Below the pieces are notes generated by a model. It was not told where the DNA came from, did no database searches, and saw nothing but the letters and a program-made list of their open reading frames with translations. From assembly GCA_009103225.1 (NCBI GenBank), contig RHPI01003603.1:1-19327 (forward strand): a DNA stretch of 19,327 bases, given 5' to 3'. This document shows, in pieces, positions 1,981-19,327 of the stretch; positions within the stretch are counted from its first letter, which is position 1; every line of letters starts with the position of its first letter. A program made the position numbers and the translations under genes. The DNA comes from Chlorokybus atmophyticus (Eukaryota; Plantae; Mesostigma and Chlorokybus algae).

Positions 1981-3059
1981 TAGTAAATTATTATATGTAG
2001 CATGCATTCTGCAGAATTTCTCAAAGATAAACGCCAGTTGATGAAGTAGAAAGTGGCCACTACTTAAAGATGCACGGGTTCCATGCTTCATAGCAAAGGC
2101 TTTGCTATGTCACTTTATACGATCGATATATGGAATATCGATTGTATAGATTATGGCCTGCAGTTCGTAGTGTGTTCAACCACAACAAAGACAGATTTCA
2201 TTTTTGTCATGACACTTGAAAGCCAGCATGCTTGATAATGTGCATTCAATGGCTGCCGACAATCATGTTGATAATTTGTACCAAAGTATTATATAATATA
2301 ATACGAAATTCAATCTCTCATGCAAATCTCGCATTTGTGGTATGCGGCCGCTTTCAAAGATCCTTGGACAAACGTGATCTGTACGTGTATATTGTAACCA
2401 CATGTTTATGATGGCGATGACAATTGCAACAAGTTGCAAAATGCACATGCGTACAAAGGGTCGATAGCAATGCTTGCATTGCGTCATCCTCCTCTCTACC
2501 CATGTCACTTGCAACATATCATAAACATCTTATGTGATTGATGGTTGCATATCATGTGATGATGCAAGATGCGTTAAGTGTCTGCTTAGCACACGACATA
2601 AGTGATTCGCGTCCTGTTCAATTGACGTCATCCCAGGAATTGTATTATTTACCACGACATAAAAGGAATTAATTTGGTAAAATTGCGGATTGCGTCATGA
2701 GCAACACATAGAAAGCACTTCAAATTTAATGGTCAATGTGAATTACCACGTGCCACTTTATGGTTGTTATTGCCTGCAGCTCAAATTGATGAATCTTTTG
2801 TGACAACCAGGAACGCTCATTGCGGATAGCAACCATGTAGCGTCATCTGGTGGTTGGCAAGCAAGTTGTGACAAACCTTGCGACTGAGACCAATGATTAG
2901 ACATTAATGACTAACTTGTACACTTAAGACTGCGTATTGTCCAAAATACCCATGCTTTGCAAGTCTTTTATCTAAACCAACCCATATCAAGGAGCAATGT
3001 GGTGGCTCATCAGACTTATAAATAGAAAATACTGCCGGAATTGGTAGACTTAAACCAAT

Positions 3060-3102
3060 GCTTACAGGAGAGACAACATCACGCTTACAGGAGAGACAAC
3101 AT
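3060..3102. repeat. 23-bp-period direct duplication at the gene's stop codon
   Basis: GCTTACAGGAGAGACAACAT at 3060 and 3083. Confidence 0.9.
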
Positions 3103-3795
3103 TAATTGAAGGACAAGTTTGCGAAAGCTGCTTGGGTGATGGTATTTACCTCCCGAGCGGCGACCCTGACCCAGCAACACACGTCCCCATGCCGCAGCCG
3201 AGCGGTACCGGCGTCGGGTCTGCATTGTTGCCCCACTTGATCCATGTCTTCCCTCTATCAACACTATACCTTGCCGCCACGGTCCCCGATGTGTACTTCA
3301 GCCCCACCCATACAGGGAAAGGCACCGTGGTGGGTGTCTCTTTTGCTGTCCCCGCAACAGACTGCCTCACCACAAAACCGAGCTTTTGCGTGCTTGCAAC
3401 ATATACTTGCAACGTATATATAGTGTGGCGCTGATGGCTTGAGGGTTGAGTCCGCCGGCGCGGATGGACACACCAGCCATGGCGCCTATGACATTGCTAA
3501 CCGATGCCAACACGTCCACCACACCGACGTAGGCCATGTTTCTGTGAACGGGTGACCCACTCAGCATGCGAGTGAACCAGCTGATGCACTGTATGGACAT
3601 AACTGATTCTTCATGGCATCGTAAGACCCCAACTTACTTGTATACCAGGTAGAAAGAGCCTGAGTTCCCCGTGTATTTGAACCCCGACCCGTGACGGTGA
3701 GGATACAACTCTCGATGTCCCACCACGCGCTGCCCCAAGTGAGAAACCCTGCAGGGGATGCACCAATGTAGGCGGGGACGAGGCCGATGGGAAGG
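3102..3795 (-). pseudogene. ConA-like beta-sandwich (DUF1349-like carbohydrate-binding-type) domain
   Basis: LPIGLVPAYIG..GSAWWD..LTVTGRGSN..AMAGVSIRAG..LGFVVRQ..PFPVWVGLKYTSGTVAARYSVDRGKTW..TITQAAFANLSFN*. The stop is at 3104-3102. A 17-nt insertion lies at 3393-3422 and a 1-nt shift at ~3153. Confidence 0.7.
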
Positions 3796-3799
3796 GACC

Positions 3800-4663
3800 T
3801 GGTGGCTTTTGGTGGAGGTGTGTTGATGGCGTACATCGCCACGTATGTCATGTACTGCGTGGGCGTCGCCGGCACCACCACGTCATAAGACTGCATCAAG
3901 CCATTGGACCACCCCGCAAACACGTACCGGATGCCCGCGTTGACAGTCTACATCACAACACCGTGTCACACACAACTCCGTTCAGCCCTGAGACACAACA
4001 CAACATGATGTTCTTACAGTTGGGGAAGCGGAGATGTAGCATGCGGAGCCGACCACAGCGGGTCGTGTGAGCGTGCCGCCAGTGGGTGGCGTTCGGAAGA
4101 AGATGTTGGCGACGCCGGCACCGACGGGGCCGAAGGTGGTAAGGTGACAGTGGTGAGGCGAGGCAGCAGCGTGCGCGTCGTGCTCGCGGTGAACCCGGCT
4201 GCTGTGGTCACCGTTAGCTGCACCACCAAAGCAGGGTAGAACTCATGGTCTGGCGTCACCAGAGAGAACAAAGCTGCCCCCTTCTGATCATGGTTATGCA
4301 AGCATTCCACCCATAGTCAGTGACAACCATCACATGCACGCATGCGCACGCACACACTCACTTACTGCACGCAGATGTGCACATGCCACGCACACACACA
4401 ACGGCAGGCTCAGTCACAACTACCCTTTCCTTTGAGCTGCTTTTTCACACTCACACTCATGTATTTCTGGGGTTAGTGCACGCATGCCCTGCCACATAGT
4501 CGTGCGAGTGGCAGATGTCAATTGCGGGGCTGGCGCAGTGTAGTACGGTGATGTTACAGAAGAGAGTGTCCATTTGCGGGTGGGATCCAGTGCCCGCCGT
4601 CAACACCTGCCCCACCGCCCACGTCGTCCCCGCCGCCGGAGAGGTAATCATGAGGGCCGGCAA
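3800..4663 (-). pseudogene. Ig-like linker modules (ITSPAAGTTWAVG..HC..CHSH..PDHEFYP..; YVFAGWSNG)
   Basis: Three exons. From recollection, these motifs follow the PKD domain in bacterial PQQ sugar dehydrogenase/PKD proteins. There is a 1-nt frameshift at ~4141. Confidence 0.65.
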
Positions 4664-4744
4664 CTACGCCGCATTGCCACCTGCACACAGTAAGCAAGTG
4701 AGTAGGTGGGTGACTGACTTTAGTAAAAGACACTGGCTCATCAC

Positions 4745-5010
4745 CTGTATCACTTTAGTGTCCGTGCGTTTGAACCCTCCTGGCCCCATGATTGTGAGCG
4801 TCACGGTGTCTGTCCCCAGCGTGCCGTACATGGCCGAGGCCACGACAGCATTCTGGTTGGGGCTGAAGTTTTTTGTCTTGAAGTCCCATGCGCGCGTAAC
4901 AATGATGCCAGGACTGAGGAACGAGCTCGATGAGTCCAACATTACCGTCAACGGGGCCACACCGAGCACGGCCCCGTCCATGATGATGGCGTTGGGTGAG
5001 TTTGATGTGG
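4745..5010 (-). pseudogene. PKD-like domain
   Basis: PNAII..GVAPLTVMLDSSSS..RAWDF..YGTLGTDTVTLTIMGPGG..TKVIQ matches the PKD pattern (APLTV.FD.S.S, WDF, Y...G.YTV.LTV). Confidence 0.75.
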
Positions 5011-5834
5011 CGACGATCCTCGCGTCAAAGTACTTCTCGCTCGCGTGAAGGAGGCAGTAAATTGCTCCCGGAACAGTGGGGCTGTAGTCGACGGCGTACA
5101 TGCCCACACCGTCGGACTTGATGTCCACCGCGCCGATGTCGTCTACCAAAATGAATGCCTTGGATGGGTTCGGTAGACCCACCGTCAACGGTAATAGCCA
5201 TATGCACCTGATGCTAAAGGCACATAGAGTAGATGTGAGTGGAAAGGTTACAGCAAGCCAGCTTGAAGTTAGAGGTTGAAGCAAAACTGTAGTCTCCCAT
5301 GAGCAGAGCGCCTTGATACTATTTAAACCACATTCACTATCAGAAGCTGACTGGTTTGCTCAAGCAGCCAATGAAGCTTGCTTACTTGGCTTGGCCATGA
5401 GGGGACATTGACAAAGTGCAGAGCGGTGATCAACCCCGAGTTCACAGACTGGCTCGCCTTCGTGCACCCATTCCTGTACACACACGTGCATCAGTGCTCT
5501 ATGCAAAGCCCACAAGATCACAGCTCACGCTCATACTGAAGTTGTCCGGCATGTTGCCGTGCTGGTACTGGAAGAAAGGCCTTGTATGAAAGAGGCGGTT
5601 GCGTCTGGTGGCAATGTCGTTGCAGGGCACTGCGTTGATGGACTGGTAACCCGCGAGTGCAAGCGTACTAGAGATGATTGGGATAACAGCGACACACACA
5701 CCCCAATTGCAACACGACTGTTCCAAAGTTGGTAGGCCCGCCGGTTGCAACTCTGTTTACTGTCGGGTATGTCAACCTGAAGCAGATCAACACAGACATC
5801 ACGCAGTCCCCAGTATTAGCAACAGCATCTTTCA

Positions 5835-5870
5835 CATCATTCACATCATCATCATCATCATCACCATCAC
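5835..5870. repeat. (CAT)n intronic microsatellite
   Basis: Direct reading. Confidence 0.85.
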
Positions 5871-6627
5871 TAGTCATGCCTCACCCATTGAGTTCTTCCC
5901 ATGTGTTATAGCCGATGTCTGCAATCCACACCTCGACGGTGTCGTCGTTGGGGTGTTTGCGCCATGCTGTCGTGAACGGGTTGCGCAGTCCATACGCCAC
6001 CACCGCCTTCTTTGCCTCTGTCCACTGCCCATCCACCAACCCGAGGACGTCCGTGTAGTAAAAGTTACCCGGATGAGGCCTGCACGCACGCATGACAACA
6101 ATCACTCTTGCAGCGTGTGTGCATGTATGTGTTGCAGAGCACGCCATGCACAAACTGGCACACATATTAGCGAGCAGTTACAGTAGACATTGCAAACGCC
6201 ACAGTCAGTGTGTCTCTAACAACACAAGGCTACTTGTCCGTGAGTGGTTGTCGCCAGCGGTAGTTAGCACGCAACCAAGACACCATCATTGCAATATCAA
6301 CAGGCGTACTTTGCGTTAAGATCAAGACGCATGAGCGTGCCACCAAACAGAGGTTTCCAGGGTCCCTGCACGCAGGAAAGGTATCTATATGACATGAGCT
6401 CCTGCACATGCGTGTTCATTCTCCGCGACAACATTAATTGTCACACGTACAGGGTCTCGTGTCATCCAATGGAGTGAGCGGAAGGAGCCGCCCTCTGCCG
6501 TGGGCGGCGTGAGGGCTATGCCCGGCACTCCCGGGTAGTCCCCGCACGCATTGCCTCGCCCGCCATAGTCAACCGTCTCAGGATACGCACCTGAGAAAGC
6601 ATGTGCGTGTGAATGTGGGTGCGCTTG

Positions 6628-6648
6628 ACAACAACAACAACAACAACA
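6628..6648. repeat. (CAA)n intronic microsatellite
   Basis: Direct reading. Confidence 0.85.
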
Positions 6649-7299
6649 TGCAGGTAGTGGTGGCTGGCACCTTCTCCCGCGGCTATGTAGAGGGCTCCTT
6701 CGGTGGTTTCGTAGAAGACGTTGCCGACCTGGTGTGTGGAGGACTCATAGCAGGTGTCAAGGGATAGGACCGTTGTGCGCTCGAGGATTGCTGCGGTTGC
6801 TGCGGTCGATGCGTGCGCGAATCACACGCCGGTTTGCCAGACACCACGTCGACAGGCACGTCGCGTTGGCCACCACGTATGGCGTCGTGTACTGCAGGAA
6901 CATGTACACGTCGGTCTCCGACCCGGGCACAGGCGTCACTGTGCATGACGTGCACGTGTAAGTACCACACGCACACAAACGCACACGCTCGTGAACAAGC
7001 ACTTCCACCCGTGCACGCGAGCGCACCCACACCCACACCCACACATAAACCCACCCACCCGCCCACACACGCACCAGCCATGCCGAGTAGTCCTCGGTCC
7101 TGTCCGCTGCTTATATCCTGAAACACGTCTAGTAGTACCATCTTTTTCTCCGGCGTGTACACGCTGTCGAAGACGACCACGCTGCCGAGCTTCTCCGCCA
7201 CAAACACGCGCGTGTCGGTGGCCGGGTTGGGTGCGAAGGCCACACGTATCGGACGCTGCAGGTCACGCACCATCGGCGCCAACAGGAAAGAAGACGAGG

Positions 7300-7410
7300 A
7301 CGCCGTGGGACCGCCAACGTGAAGGAAGAGGAGAGCAGCGATGTGCATAGGGTGATGAGAGAGATCTGGACCAGGTGAAGCAGAAGGCTGCTTGAGGAAG
7401 AGTGAGCCAT
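7300..7410 (-). other. Predicted signal-peptide segment MAHSSSSSLLLHLVQISLITLCTSLLSSSFTLA-VP
   Basis: ATG at 7410, a hydrophobic core and a TLA|VP cleavage-like site. It joins the dehydrogenase frame only if one C is added to the run at 7307-7309. Confidence 0.55.
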
Positions 7411-9358: not shown

Positions 9359-9600
9359 GCTGCTGAATATGCTTCTCTATATCTGTGGTGTTGATCAAGG
9401 CTTACTAGTCATACTAGCGTTTACTTGCTGTTGCCGTGCGTTGCTTCGCTGCTGAGCATGCTGCTCTTAACTTGTGGTTTCAACTAAATCTCCTTAGCTA
9501 GCTACCGTGTCATTGCCATTGCCGTTGTGTGGCTGCTGTGAGTGCTGCTCTTCACCTGTGGTTTGAAGCAAATCTTACTAGCGTGTTATGGCTATTGCAT
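9359..9600. repeat. Degenerate tandem repeat, ~3 x 84-89 bp
   Basis: GCTGCTG..TGCTKCTCT..YTGTGGT..A..CT..YTAG core recurs at 9359, 9448 and 9532. Confidence 0.7.
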
Positions 9601-9638
9601 GATCCTTGGCAAATGTCTATATAAGCCTGCAATTGTAG

Positions 9639-9896
9639 CGACCAACGCGCAGGCACGCCACAGCTGAGCGTCTACAAGAGCTCGTCCTCGAGGACGTGAA
9701 GGGAGCCAGCAAGTCGCCAGGGCTTGGGGAGCAGATCCTGCAGCTGATGCAAGAATATGGGAGGAGTCGGGAAGATCTTCTGCAACAGTTGCGACCGCTG
9801 GTAGCAGCACTAGAGGCTCTTGTTCAACAGCTGGGGGGGCAGCGCCGCGAGCCACGTCCCAGCGGCGGCGACGCTGGAGGTGGACCAGACGCCTAG
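9639..9896 (+). CDS. Putative terminal exon or short ORF encoding a Leu/Gln/Glu-rich helical peptide
   Basis: GC-rich open frame after a TGTAG| acceptor: RPTRRHATAERLQELVLEDVKG..EQILQLMQEYGRSREDLLQQLRPLVAALEALVQQLGG..PDA*. It is followed by GT-rich UTR/intron-like sequence. A TATATAA at 9618 could alternatively be a promoter. Confidence 0.4.
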   Translation, partial: RPTRRHATAERLQELVLEDVKGASKSPGLGEQILQLMQEYGRSREDLLQQLRPLVAALEALVQQLGGQRREPRPSGGDAGGGPDA

Positions 9897-10105
9897 GGCC
9901 CTTGTGTAAGTGAATGCTTGTGTACACATGCTTATGTACACAAAAGTTGATTGTGTGTGGGCGTGAGGTGAGCGTGTAGAGAGAGAGAGAGAATGCAAGA
10001 GGGGTATGCCCATATGTGTATGCATTTGTGCATGTCACGCTTGGGTGCAACATGATGATTTGTGCAAAGCACTCAGTGCATGCTGCATCGACCTTGGTTT
10101 TTTTT

Positions 10106-10556
10106 GGGGGGGGGGGGGGGGGGGGGGGNNNNNNNNNNNNNNNNNNNNNNNNNNNNNNNNNNNNNNNNNNNNNNNNNNNNNNNNNNNNNNNNNNNNNNNN
10201 NNNNNNNNNNNNNNNNNNNNNNNNNNNNNNNNNNNNNNNNNNNNNNNNNNNNNNNNNNNNNNNNNNNNNNNNNNNNNNNNNNNNNNNNNNNNNNNNNNNN
10301 NNNNNNNNNNNNNNNNNNNNNNNNNNNNNNNNNNNNNNNNNNNNNNNNNNNNNNNNNNNNNNNNNNNNNNNNNNNNNNNNNNNNNNNNNNNNNNNNNNNN
10401 NNNNNNNNNNNNNNNNNNNNNNNNNNNNNNNNNNNNNNNNNNNNNNNNNNNNNNNNNNNNNNNNNNNNNNNNNNNNNNNNNNNNNNNNNNNNNNNNNNNN
10501 NNNNNNNNNNNNNNNNNNNNNNNTGTGGGGTGGGGGGGGGGGGGGGGGGGGGGGGG
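10106..10556. other. Assembly gap (N 10129-10523) flanked by poly-G
   Basis: Direct reading. Confidence 0.98.
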
Positions 10557-10738
10557 CACGCAAATCAGTGTATTAAGCATGACACAAGAGTCCAAGATTC
10601 CTAGCTGCATGTAGCTAATTGTATAGTGTATACAAGTGTATACAACGAACAACTTGGTGTACGTATAAAAAAAAATGAGAGGACAGTCTACTAGGCTAGC
10701 CAGGATGGAAGACGGGGATAGGTAGAAGTATCATAGGG

Positions 10739-15401: not shown

Positions 15402-16260
15402 AACCTCCGTGGGAGGAAGCCATCGTACTCCCCAATCTTGCACTGCAGAGGTTACCGGCCCCAGCTACCCCCACGGACTTGTTCATGTTCAGTTGTGAGT
15501 CCGATGCTATGCAGTATGTAAACAAGCACTCTTGCAGTCCCGCAAATGCTGACTCGGTGCGTACCATATAAACCTTGGTATCGTCCGCAAACCCTGTATA
15601 GCGGACTTTGGCATCATCACCAGATTCTTTTACGGGGTTGAGAAGTTAAATGCCTTTCATTGTGGGGGAAGTGCGGAGGAGAGCACCCAATGTCTCTGTG
15701 GCAAGGATGAACAGGGAAGGGGCGAGGGGGCAGCCTTGTCATACACTTTGCTCGAGAGGAAAGGATGCAAAAAGATAGCCATTGATGTTTACGCAGCTGC
15801 GGCCTCCCGTTGATTGTCTGTACCCAATTCAGCCAAGTCTCCGGGAACGCAAGACGTTAAGTACGCGGGTGATGAATGCCCATTGAGTCTGTCAAAGGTC
15901 TTTTCAAAGTCCAGCAAATCGAGTGCGCCTTCCTGACCTGTGGCTTCGGCATGCAATATGACGTCAAGGGCCACTAGGATGTTGTCCAAGATGTATCGGT
16001 GAGGGACAAATCCTACTTGCGCTGGATGTATGTACTCTGGGAGCAGAGGGCGTCGGCGGGTGGAGAGAGTTATAATAAGAAGTTTGTAGTGGACCGTGAG
16101 CAAAGTGATGGGTCTCCGGTTTTTAAGATGGCCCCTATCTCCCTTCTTATAAATAAGGATAATCACGCCTTGCACTGTGTATCCCAGGCGTTGACGCTCA
16201 AGAACATGGAGGCAATATTGGTGGTATTCCTCTTTAAGAAGTGCCAGAAGTGACACCAAA
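15402..16260 (-). pseudogene. LINE reverse transcriptase domain
   Basis: ILIYKKGD..KNRRPITLLTVHYKL, IHPAQVGFVPHRYILDN, LLDFEKTFDR, SV*QGCPLAPSLF (15741-15706), FADDT (15591-15577), ASDSQLNMNKS. Confidence 0.95.
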
Positions 16261-16979
16261 AGGCTATTGTGAAGCCAACCTCACTAGGTGCTTTATGTGG
16301 TGACATGAATGTCAATGCAGCGTGTCAATTCCTCTTTTTTAATGGGGAGCACAAGGTTCTCCGCTTCTTGTGCTTTTTATCGAGGGGAAAGGGCGTCAAG
16401 GCACTTCACCATTGCTTCCTCTATTGCTGCAGGTGATCTATGTGAAAACGTGAACATGTCCTCGTAGAACTTTGCCGCTTCTTCACACATCTTCTATGAG
16501 TTCGTAATAAGGGTGCCGTAAGCATGTCAACTCCATGGTTGATGTAGTGCATGTGATTGACTTGGCGGGGGGGAGTGCCAGCCTAAAAACAATCAGATGT
16601 CATTGTTTCCCTTTTAGCCGCCATCTCGCTGCTCTTTTGTTCAATTGTTTTAAGAGGATTGTGTGTGTGAGGCTGATAGTTCTGGATTTGCAAGGGACTT
16701 TGTAAGCAGTGTATCTATGGTTTGTAGCTCTTAGGAGAGTGTGTCCACCTGTGATATTCGCTGCCTTGCCCGTCTGCGCATGTGTTGTTGTGCTACGCAA
16801 GGCGCTCTATACAGCATTTTTTTTAAACCACACTATATGCTCGCCACCAGCAAGAGTAGATGGGGGTGCGCCACAGTTGCAGAGATCTTCTATCCCTGTG
16901 GTGAAGAGGCAATCGTTCAGCAGGAGGGGATCAAGTTTCCACAACCCTTTTCCAAGTGTGGAGTGCTGCGCAGCTTGAG

Positions 16980-17799: not shown

Positions 17800-19327
17800 G
17801 GAGTAGCTGCCTGGCTGTAGGGAAGCTTCTTGTTGGAAGGGCCTCGTGGTGCAAGGGTGAGGGGGCGGTGTGTTGATTGAATCGGAGGCGCCCTTGGCTT
17901 GAGCTAGGAAGTCTATGGTGAATGTGTTGAGGCATTTTGTGCACCCTCTTGCACCCCGAGCATCAGACAGAGCTCAAGCGAGACCACATCTGCAGAGTCT
18001 GTATGGTTGGGAGGAGAATCAGGTCCTTCGCTATCTCCTTCCATTAGGATCCTGATTCAAGCTGATATCGAAATAATACCTCTTGTGGTGGTGTGGTGCG
18101 TGAAGCTTAAGGATTGTGAGTTGAAAACGTGTGCGTTTGGTGAAAGCCCCAAGCGTTACGACGATGGTTTGTGAAGTTGGGGGAGGGCATGGGCAGGGGG
18201 GGTTATTGAAGTCACGTGATGTGCTTAGTATAAGGGGGATTGATAGAAGAGGTGAGGAGCGTGAAACGCCAACCCACCACGTTTGTTGACTCCACCTCAG
18301 CACCAACAGCGAGGTGCGTGCACTTGTTCGGAAATTTTCGTCTGCTGTTGAGTGGGATGTGTTGGTGTTGGGCTTTGGGTTGCGTGGGGGTGACATGGTC
18401 AACCTTCGTGCGCTTCCTCTCGTGCTGCACGGAGAAGGTGGGGAGGGTGGGAGGGTGGGAGGGTCTTGCATTTCTGTTTCTTGGGAAGGGGTGGTGGTTT
18501 TGTGTGTTGACGGGGGGGCGGGGGGGGGGGGGGGGNNNNNNNNNNCGGGGGGGCGGGGGGGGGGGGGGTCTTTGTCCCAATGGTCCTCCATCCAGGAGTG
18601 AACTGCTGAGGCGAGGCTGAAGAGGGAGATTCTTCCCACCATCAATTTGCTGGGTTTAACTGGTGCACTGGCTGTCCACTCCATTAGGTCCGCCCATGCT
18701 TGTTTTGGTTGAAGGATGTGGGTGTCACGTAAGGGGAGGAGTATTGGACGAACCAGAAAGAGGGTGGAGTGGTCTTTCCTCCTATCACCCGGATTGCTGA
18801 GAAGAGAGAGGACTCTAACTTCATCTCTAGCTCATCTTCGACTTCCACTCCTGCCTGTTGAAGTGTGAAGTGCAGGATTGAGGAAGCGTGATGTGGGGGT
18901 GTGGTAGTGAGGGTGGTAGCAAAGGTCAGATCGCCCTTGTTCTTAATTTGCTTCTGTCTGTAAGAAGGAGTGAGGGATTGGGAGTGGTGGAAGAGGTGAG
19001 TGGCTTGTCTAGCGCAAGTACTATTGGGATCAGTTGTGCCGAGGCCCACGGGGTTTGTCCCGGTAGATGTCCAAGCGCTGCTGTGATCATCACAATGATT
19101 GCAGCTAGGTCTTGTTCTTGAGAGTTGCGGGGTGATGGGGCTGGGTTGGGAGGGGAGGTTTGTGCTGCTCCAGTGTGTGGTGGTTGTGTGAAGGGGAGGC
19201 ATAGAGTTTATCTTCTGGCACCTCCATCCAGGCAGCGTGCTTATCTTCTTTCGCTTCATGCTCCTCCATCATGTCGCACCAGCGGGAGGGAGAAGAAAGC
19301 ATGGGGTGAGGGGCACTTTGCGCGCGG
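17800..19327 (-). pseudogene. LINE ORF1 remnant
   Basis: Long broken ORFs (18684-19259, 18031-18684) sit directly upstream of the APE start. They are Pro/Thr/Ser-rich, with a degenerate CxxC (GCTKC) near 17940. The call rests mainly on position. Confidence 0.55.
18512..18568. repeat. G-rich tract with a 10-N gap, inside LINE ORF1
   Basis: Direct reading; N at 18536-18545. Confidence 0.9.

Follow-up and report, generated by a model that had tools for sequence, protein, structure and literature searches.

We studied a gene copy in a stretch of 19,327 nucleotides from the streptophyte alga Chlorokybus atmophyticus (contig RHPI01003603.1 of assembly GCA_009103225.1; in the following "the window" denotes this whole stretch). 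Between positions 7348 and 3102 of its minus strand we found 13 coding pieces that are collinear with bacterial "glucose/arabinose dehydrogenase/PKD" proteins of ~850 residues. The modules follow each other in the order GSDH-type propeller, PKD domain, immunoglobulin-like (Ig-like) module with a PDHE(Y/F) motif and DUF1349-type (ConA-like) end. The pieces lie in stop-free stretches of three frames, ordered as in the bacterial protein, between an ATG at 7348 and a TAA at 3104-3102. An earlier reading of the bare sequence (the original prediction) had located such a gene here, and we found the coding pieces at that place, on the minus strand. It had also counted ~13 introns and given a spliced translation. 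Introns are present, but we counted 12 positions, and the modules can be read in order only when at least six frameshifts and two damaged splice donors are ignored.

The exon-intron model was derived from frame-compatible GT..AG pairs together with homologs, giving 13 exons and 12 inferred intron positions (Table 1). For the homology search we built a family profile, a hidden Markov model (HMM), from 27 bacterial GSDH-PKD proteins and searched the 19 kb window with it on both strands. The profile matched eight collinear minus-strand pieces between 7270 and 3801 with E-values from 4.8e-11 to 2e-4, and no further match to it was found elsewhere in the window on either strand. A tblastn search with the bacterial protein P0152 (855 residues) was collinear over P0152 residues 55-773, and a Chlorokybus paralog, P0004, matched the window with an E-value of ~1e-80. 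The motifs PPxAEGG, GLRNPF, AAGTTW, CH.H, PDHE(Y/F)P and WS(D/N)GG are common to the window and the bacterial proteins. The bacterial architecture that had been proposed for the gene is thus borne out by the collinear match over the propeller, the PKD domain and the PDHE(Y/F)P module.

Table 1. Coordinates of the exons, introns and 3' end of the gene copy, with the evidence for each.
Feature	Position	Strand	Content and evidence
Exon 1	7075..7348	-	ATG start; short hydrophobic stretch at the N-terminus, possibly a signal peptide; blade 1 of the propeller; donor GTGCGT at 7074; HMM positions 50-109, E 7.6e-8; 40% identity to P0152 residues 55-111
Exon 2	6671..6938	-	Propeller, catalytic-type His motif THQVGN; frameshift at ~6816-6820; HMM positions 170-217 match frame 2, upstream half reads frame 1, no space for an intron
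Exon 3	6451..6590	-	Propeller, PPTAEGG..RS motif; HMM positions 211-266, E 6.3e-9; 55% identity to P0152 residues 214-255
Exon 4	6310..6365	-	Short propeller piece; frame-compatible GT..AG on both sides; position from collinearity only
Exon 5	5885..6079	-	Propeller, GLRNPF motif; HMM positions 294-330, E 6.1e-10; Pfam GSDH E 0.044
Exon 6	5538..5776	-	Propeller; switch from frame 1 to frame 2 (frameshift) and in-frame TAG near 5670; one-base loss at donor 5538/5537
Exon 7	5386..5473	-	Propeller; 53% identity to P0004 residues 5-47; donor GTAAGC at 5385
Exon 8	5286..5318	-	Conserved 33-base YQGALLMGDYS piece; donor after 5286 not GT
Exon 9	4745..5213	-	Last propeller blade and PKD domain; HMM positions 427-576, E 4.8e-11; PKD_4 E 0.012; 58% identity to P0004
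Exon 10	4496..4663	-	First half of Ig-like module (ITSPAAGTTW .. CHSHDY); HMM positions 581-636, E 3.7e-5
Exon 11	4018..4283	-	PDHEF part of Ig-like module; frameshift at ~4140-4150; HMM positions 639-706, E 2.3e-8
Exon 12	3638..3947	-	End of Ig-like module (YVFAGWS) and start of DUF1349-like domain; frameshift at ~3690-3700; HMM positions 729-770
Exon 13	3102..3541	-	DUF1349-like (ConA-type) domain; frameshifts at ~3421-3427 and ~3165-3185; three frames needed to track P0004 residues 480-641; ancestral stop TAA
3' untranslated stretch	2915..3101	-	Contained in RNA contig
Introns 1-6	7074-6939, 6670-6591, 6450-6366, 6309-6080, 5884-5777, 5537-5474	-	GT..AG pairs and homologs
Introns 7-12	5385-5319, 5285-5214, 4744-4664, 4495-4284, 4017-3948, 3637-3542	-	GT..AG pairs and homologs

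Against Pfam the best single exon scored 13.5 bits for GSDH (PF07995; E 0.044), where the gathering cut-off is 25, and the bacterial relatives collinear with the window reached 82-105 bits (E 1e-23 to 1e-30). PKD_4 scored 16.1 bits on the exon stretch 4742-5182 (cut-off 27), and the PKD columns of the window are aligned with clear-cut PKD domains in P0152 and P0177. Neither the window exons, taken singly, nor P0004:430-643 gave a DUF1349 (PF07081) or ConA match in Pfam. The acidobacterial relatives L029 and L057 carry GSDH, PKD and, after the Ig-like module, Pfam DUF1349, and both align with P0004 to its end. The C-terminus of P0004 aligns to the DUF1349 region of L057 (E 3e-4), and the tblastn match runs through this region. 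The ConA-like/DUF1349 assignment of the original prediction is therefore supported through this chain of homologs and not directly. A single-sequence AlphaFold model of P0004 had a predicted confidence (pLDDT) of 32, too low to be of use. In the propeller we observed THQVGN..EGALYI within 6671-6938 and GLRNPF within 5885-6079, so that both the His motif (H.xG...DG.LY) and the RNP motif are present, and through P0152 they align to the same motifs of the Thermus structure 2ISM. In soluble glucose dehydrogenase (sGDH) these motifs touch the substrate and pyrroloquinoline quinone (PQQ).

In the public RNA run X1 we found a contig of 1354 bases that is 100% identical to the window, at a depth of ~12. 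It joins 2915-3541, 3638-3947, 4018-4217 and 4455-4641 with CT..AC at the joints on the plus strand (GT..AG on the minus strand), showing transcription from the minus strand and splicing of the RNA. The gene thus carries spliceosomal introns, as had been predicted, and they are removed in the alga. Two introns of the model, 3637-3542 and 4017-3948, and only these two, were exactly confirmed by RNA. The third intron was spliced from 4455 to 4217 instead of the predicted 4496 to 4283. This splice uses an acceptor inside exon 11, drops the PDHEF piece and retains a TGA at 4459-4457. We considered it as a compensation for the frameshift near 4140, which is ruled out as the TGA stands in the homologous frame. 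The X1 contig covering 4818-5331 keeps the intron 5285-5214. Another X1 contig covers 5562-5725 gap-free, within exon 6, and 5776-5538 is a single exon. The spliced RNA contig also joins 4641 to 4818, skipping 176 bases. This joint has GT..AG boundaries when read on the plus strand, opposite to the gene; unusual splicing, an antisense transcript or an artefact of the library may account for it.

Compared to P0004 and the bacterial proteins the window copy has at least six frameshifts: one each in exons 2, 6 (with a TAG), 11 and 12 and two in exon 13. The last four of these are covered by RNA pieces identical to the window and free of gaps, and hence they are not assembly errors. At the donors 5538/5537 and 5286/5285 the expected AG|GT reads AGT, and with one base lost at each no frame-compatible donor remains. 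The TAG at 4666-4664 is either part of the acceptor of exon 10 or a nonsense codon at a Glu position of P0004. No single open frame runs through the correctly spliced exons. Taken together, the frameshifts, the damaged donors, the retained intron and the aberrant splicing identify the locus as a transcribed pseudogene whose RNA contains early stops and cannot give a full-length protein. The claim that this locus encodes a secreted carbohydrate-oxidising enzyme is accordingly not borne out.

The same data bear on two other explanations. The gene might be intact and working, with frameshifts introduced by the assembly, for example through wrong homopolymer lengths if it was built from long reads; most of the lesions are one-base indels, in part located in short G runs, and the window has gaps of Ns and looks like a draft. 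We consider this very improbable: RNA contigs identical to the window pass gap-free through four of the frameshifts and one damaged donor, stops arise from the observed splicing itself, and for the 3' half an intact gene is already contradicted. Alternatively, the broken enzyme gene might have been kept for another role, as a regulatory RNA or as a source of a short protein from leftover open frames, given that transcription continues (contig depth ~12) and that three introns are spliced out. Young pseudogenes are commonly transcribed, and we saw no conserved short frame or RNA structure, though no search was aimed at either, so we regard such a role as improbable.

We then compared the pseudogene with its paralogs. 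With the PKD exon as query, P0004 was the sole close relative among 1.8 billion representatives, in a search otherwise swamped by multi-PKD proteins. P0004 is the C. atmophyticus protein jgi/Chlat1/6984 (Chrsp56S06676; Chlat1 6984). From the last propeller blades through the PKD domain and the Ig-like module to the C-terminus it shares 58-61% identity with the window copy, and in the trees P0004 and the window exon form a clade at 100/100. P0004 is open across the whole C-terminal part, whereas the window copy needs four frameshifts there. The P0004 model is without the N-terminal propeller, and at residues ~38-69 it appears to read through an intron starting Val-Ser (GTxAGx) at the same position as the window intron 5385-5319. 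The public Chlat1 6984 model is thus probably incomplete. The 33-base exon (YQGALLMGDYS, 5288-5320) matched RNA contigs of the runs X1, X2 and X3 with 3 mismatches. The depth of these contigs was 918 in X1, 6.6 in X2 and 2.2 in X3, which suggests a strongly expressed paralog of the family, at least in X1. A further contig of 1069 bases in X2 (depth 90) matched 4944-4980, 5289-5312 and 5536-5579 at 90-95% with different spacing, and probably comes from a spliced transcript, either of a paralog or of a sister strain's ortholog.

Outside Chlorokybus the relatives are bacterial. In the search with P0004 all 70 other matches were bacterial or metagenomic proteins of 750-1100 residues with GSDH and PKD, the named ones all from Actinomycetota, and the nearest ESM Atlas clusters were 100% Bacteria. 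When each prokaryotic species was represented by one genome, relatives were detected in at least 387 bacterial species, mostly Actinomycetota; further ones belong to Chloroflexota, Acidobacteriota, Myxococcota and Nitrospirota. In the searches made, which were word-seeded and limited to the proteomes covered, we found no eukaryotic relatives other than the Chlorokybus paralog. A word search with exon 4742-5218 returned no fragmentary relatives of 87-278 residues.

Within the bacterial PQQ-dependent sugar dehydrogenase/PKD family the module order is as in the window over the whole length. Examples are the metagenomic P0152 and P0151 (~855 residues), proteins of Longispora sp. K20-0274 (P0195) and Actinoplanes sp. 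ATCC 53533 (P0185), and the two from Acidobacteriota mentioned above. Identity to the window is 25-55% per piece, and the window copy differs from these proteins by its introns, its eukaryotic flanks and its broken frame. We know of no biochemically characterised member of the bacterial GSDH-PKD-Ig-like subfamily. The characterised GSDH enzymes (Acinetobacter sGDH, Escherichia coli YliI/Asd and Thermus 2ISM) are without PKD, Ig-like and DUF1349 modules, and with E-values of 1e-14 for P0152 against 2ISM and 2.5e-6 against sGDH the solved structures are no more than remotely related to the bacterial proteins.

Introns, identical spliced RNA and flanks with repeat and LINE (long interspersed nuclear element) remnants place the gene in the host. 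Bacterial contamination of the assembly would fit the finding that the best non-algal matches are soil bacteria, but spliceosomal introns are removed in the RNA, identity to any bacterium is only 30-38% and remnants of LINEs and other eukaryotic repeats lie in the flanks, and we give this explanation practically no weight. Alternatively, the gene could have come down vertically within eukaryotes, as a GSDH-fold relative of plant HIPL1 or animal HHIP with no more than a resemblance to bacterial proteins. Proteins of this fold occur in plants and animals and in fungi, where the AA12 PQQ pyranose dehydrogenase is a known precedent for a eukaryotic PQQ enzyme using PQQ made by others (PMC4133262), and our tree cannot prove that the algal genes are nested within bacteria. 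HHIP, HIPL1 and AA12 share the propeller superfamily with the window gene but have different domain layouts. The propeller exons matched none of the solved HHIP, sGDH, YliI or AA12 chains even at an E-value of 10, in line with the separation from HHIP and AA12 made in the original prediction; HIPL1 is set apart by domain layout alone. The same exons are 40-55% identical to the bacterial GSDH-PKD family, and outside Chlorokybus only bacteria showed the arrangement of PKD, Ig-like and DUF1349 modules, with no other eukaryote in the searches. Vertical descent is thus highly unlikely.

Horizontal transfer from bacteria to the alga is well supported by these sequence comparisons, and the distribution, the architecture and the residence in the host make it the best reading. 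The long stem of the algal clade (2.3-2.5 changes per site), the introns and the 40% divergence between the paralogs argue for an old event. With such a long stem branch no donor can be named. The soil-bacterial, in particular actinobacterial, source suggested earlier agrees with the nearest non-Chlorokybus relatives, which are bacterial and, where named, Actinomycetota, but it does not extend to a donor as the placement in the tree has no support.

We consider it probable that the locus is a pseudogene of a small Chlorokybus family that descends from bacteria by transfer, followed by intron gain, duplication and decay. The ancestor would have been a bacterial secreted multi-domain protein with a six-bladed GSDH-type propeller, a PKD domain, an Ig-like module and a DUF1349/ConA-like domain; it was probably secreted and acted as a propeller enzyme with modules directed at carbohydrates. 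After horizontal transfer into the nuclear genome of the alga, its gene would have acquired spliceosomal introns and undergone duplication. The window copy would later have gathered single-base indels and splice-site damage while its RNA was still made and partly spliced. The direction of the transfer, the order of these events and the activity of the ancestral enzyme are what we infer from the observations above. Several points weigh against this history. X1 contigs give no RNA coverage over 5726-6981, so that the lesion at ~6816-6820 is seen in the assembly only. In-frame nonsense substitutions are few relative to indels. A minor productive isoform of the 3' part may exist, since contigs drop rare isoforms, though it would still meet the frameshifts. 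The absence from other eukaryotes depends on word-seeded searches and on the available proteomes. Finally, the algal clade falls among bacterial sequences without support, and the grouping with its apparent sister, the Anaerolineales sequence L027, scores 14/21, which gives no support for naming a donor.

Gene transfer from soil bacteria to streptophyte algae is a recognised theme in the move of plants onto land. The family would add a secreted, carbohydrate-directed and possibly PQQ-using enzyme to the transferred genes of these algae, and it would have resided in the alga long enough for intron gain, duplication and the loss of copies. In the literature we found no paper on a GSDH-PKD-Ig-like-DUF1349 family in Chlorokybus. 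Gene counts for the family must distinguish intact from decayed members, and work on the enzyme should turn to the intact paralogs and not to the window copy. Some members of the family may still be functional, secreted enzymes that rely on PQQ scavenged from bacteria of the soil. This possibility is based on intact-looking paralogs such as Chlat1 6984 and on the abundant RNA contigs of sister samples that have only the conserved 33-base exon in common with the locus, and we put it forward tentatively, as something we would rather doubt than expect. If true, the green lineage would gain its first PQQ-type sugar oxidoreductase system; an early land alga would depend on its bacterial neighbours for a cofactor, and the window locus would record turnover within the family.

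The surroundings of the gene form a draft region. Runs of Ns flanked by long G or C runs at ~1900-1990, 9600-10560 and 18400-18450 mark assembly gaps. On the minus strand an open stretch at 15792-16280 resembles a fragment of a LINE-type reverse transcriptase. Simple repeats (CACC-rich, CAA and CAT runs) occur within the introns at 7000-7060, 6620-6645 and 5840-5870, and the repeat stretch 7024-7056 draws very deep, unrelated RNA contigs.

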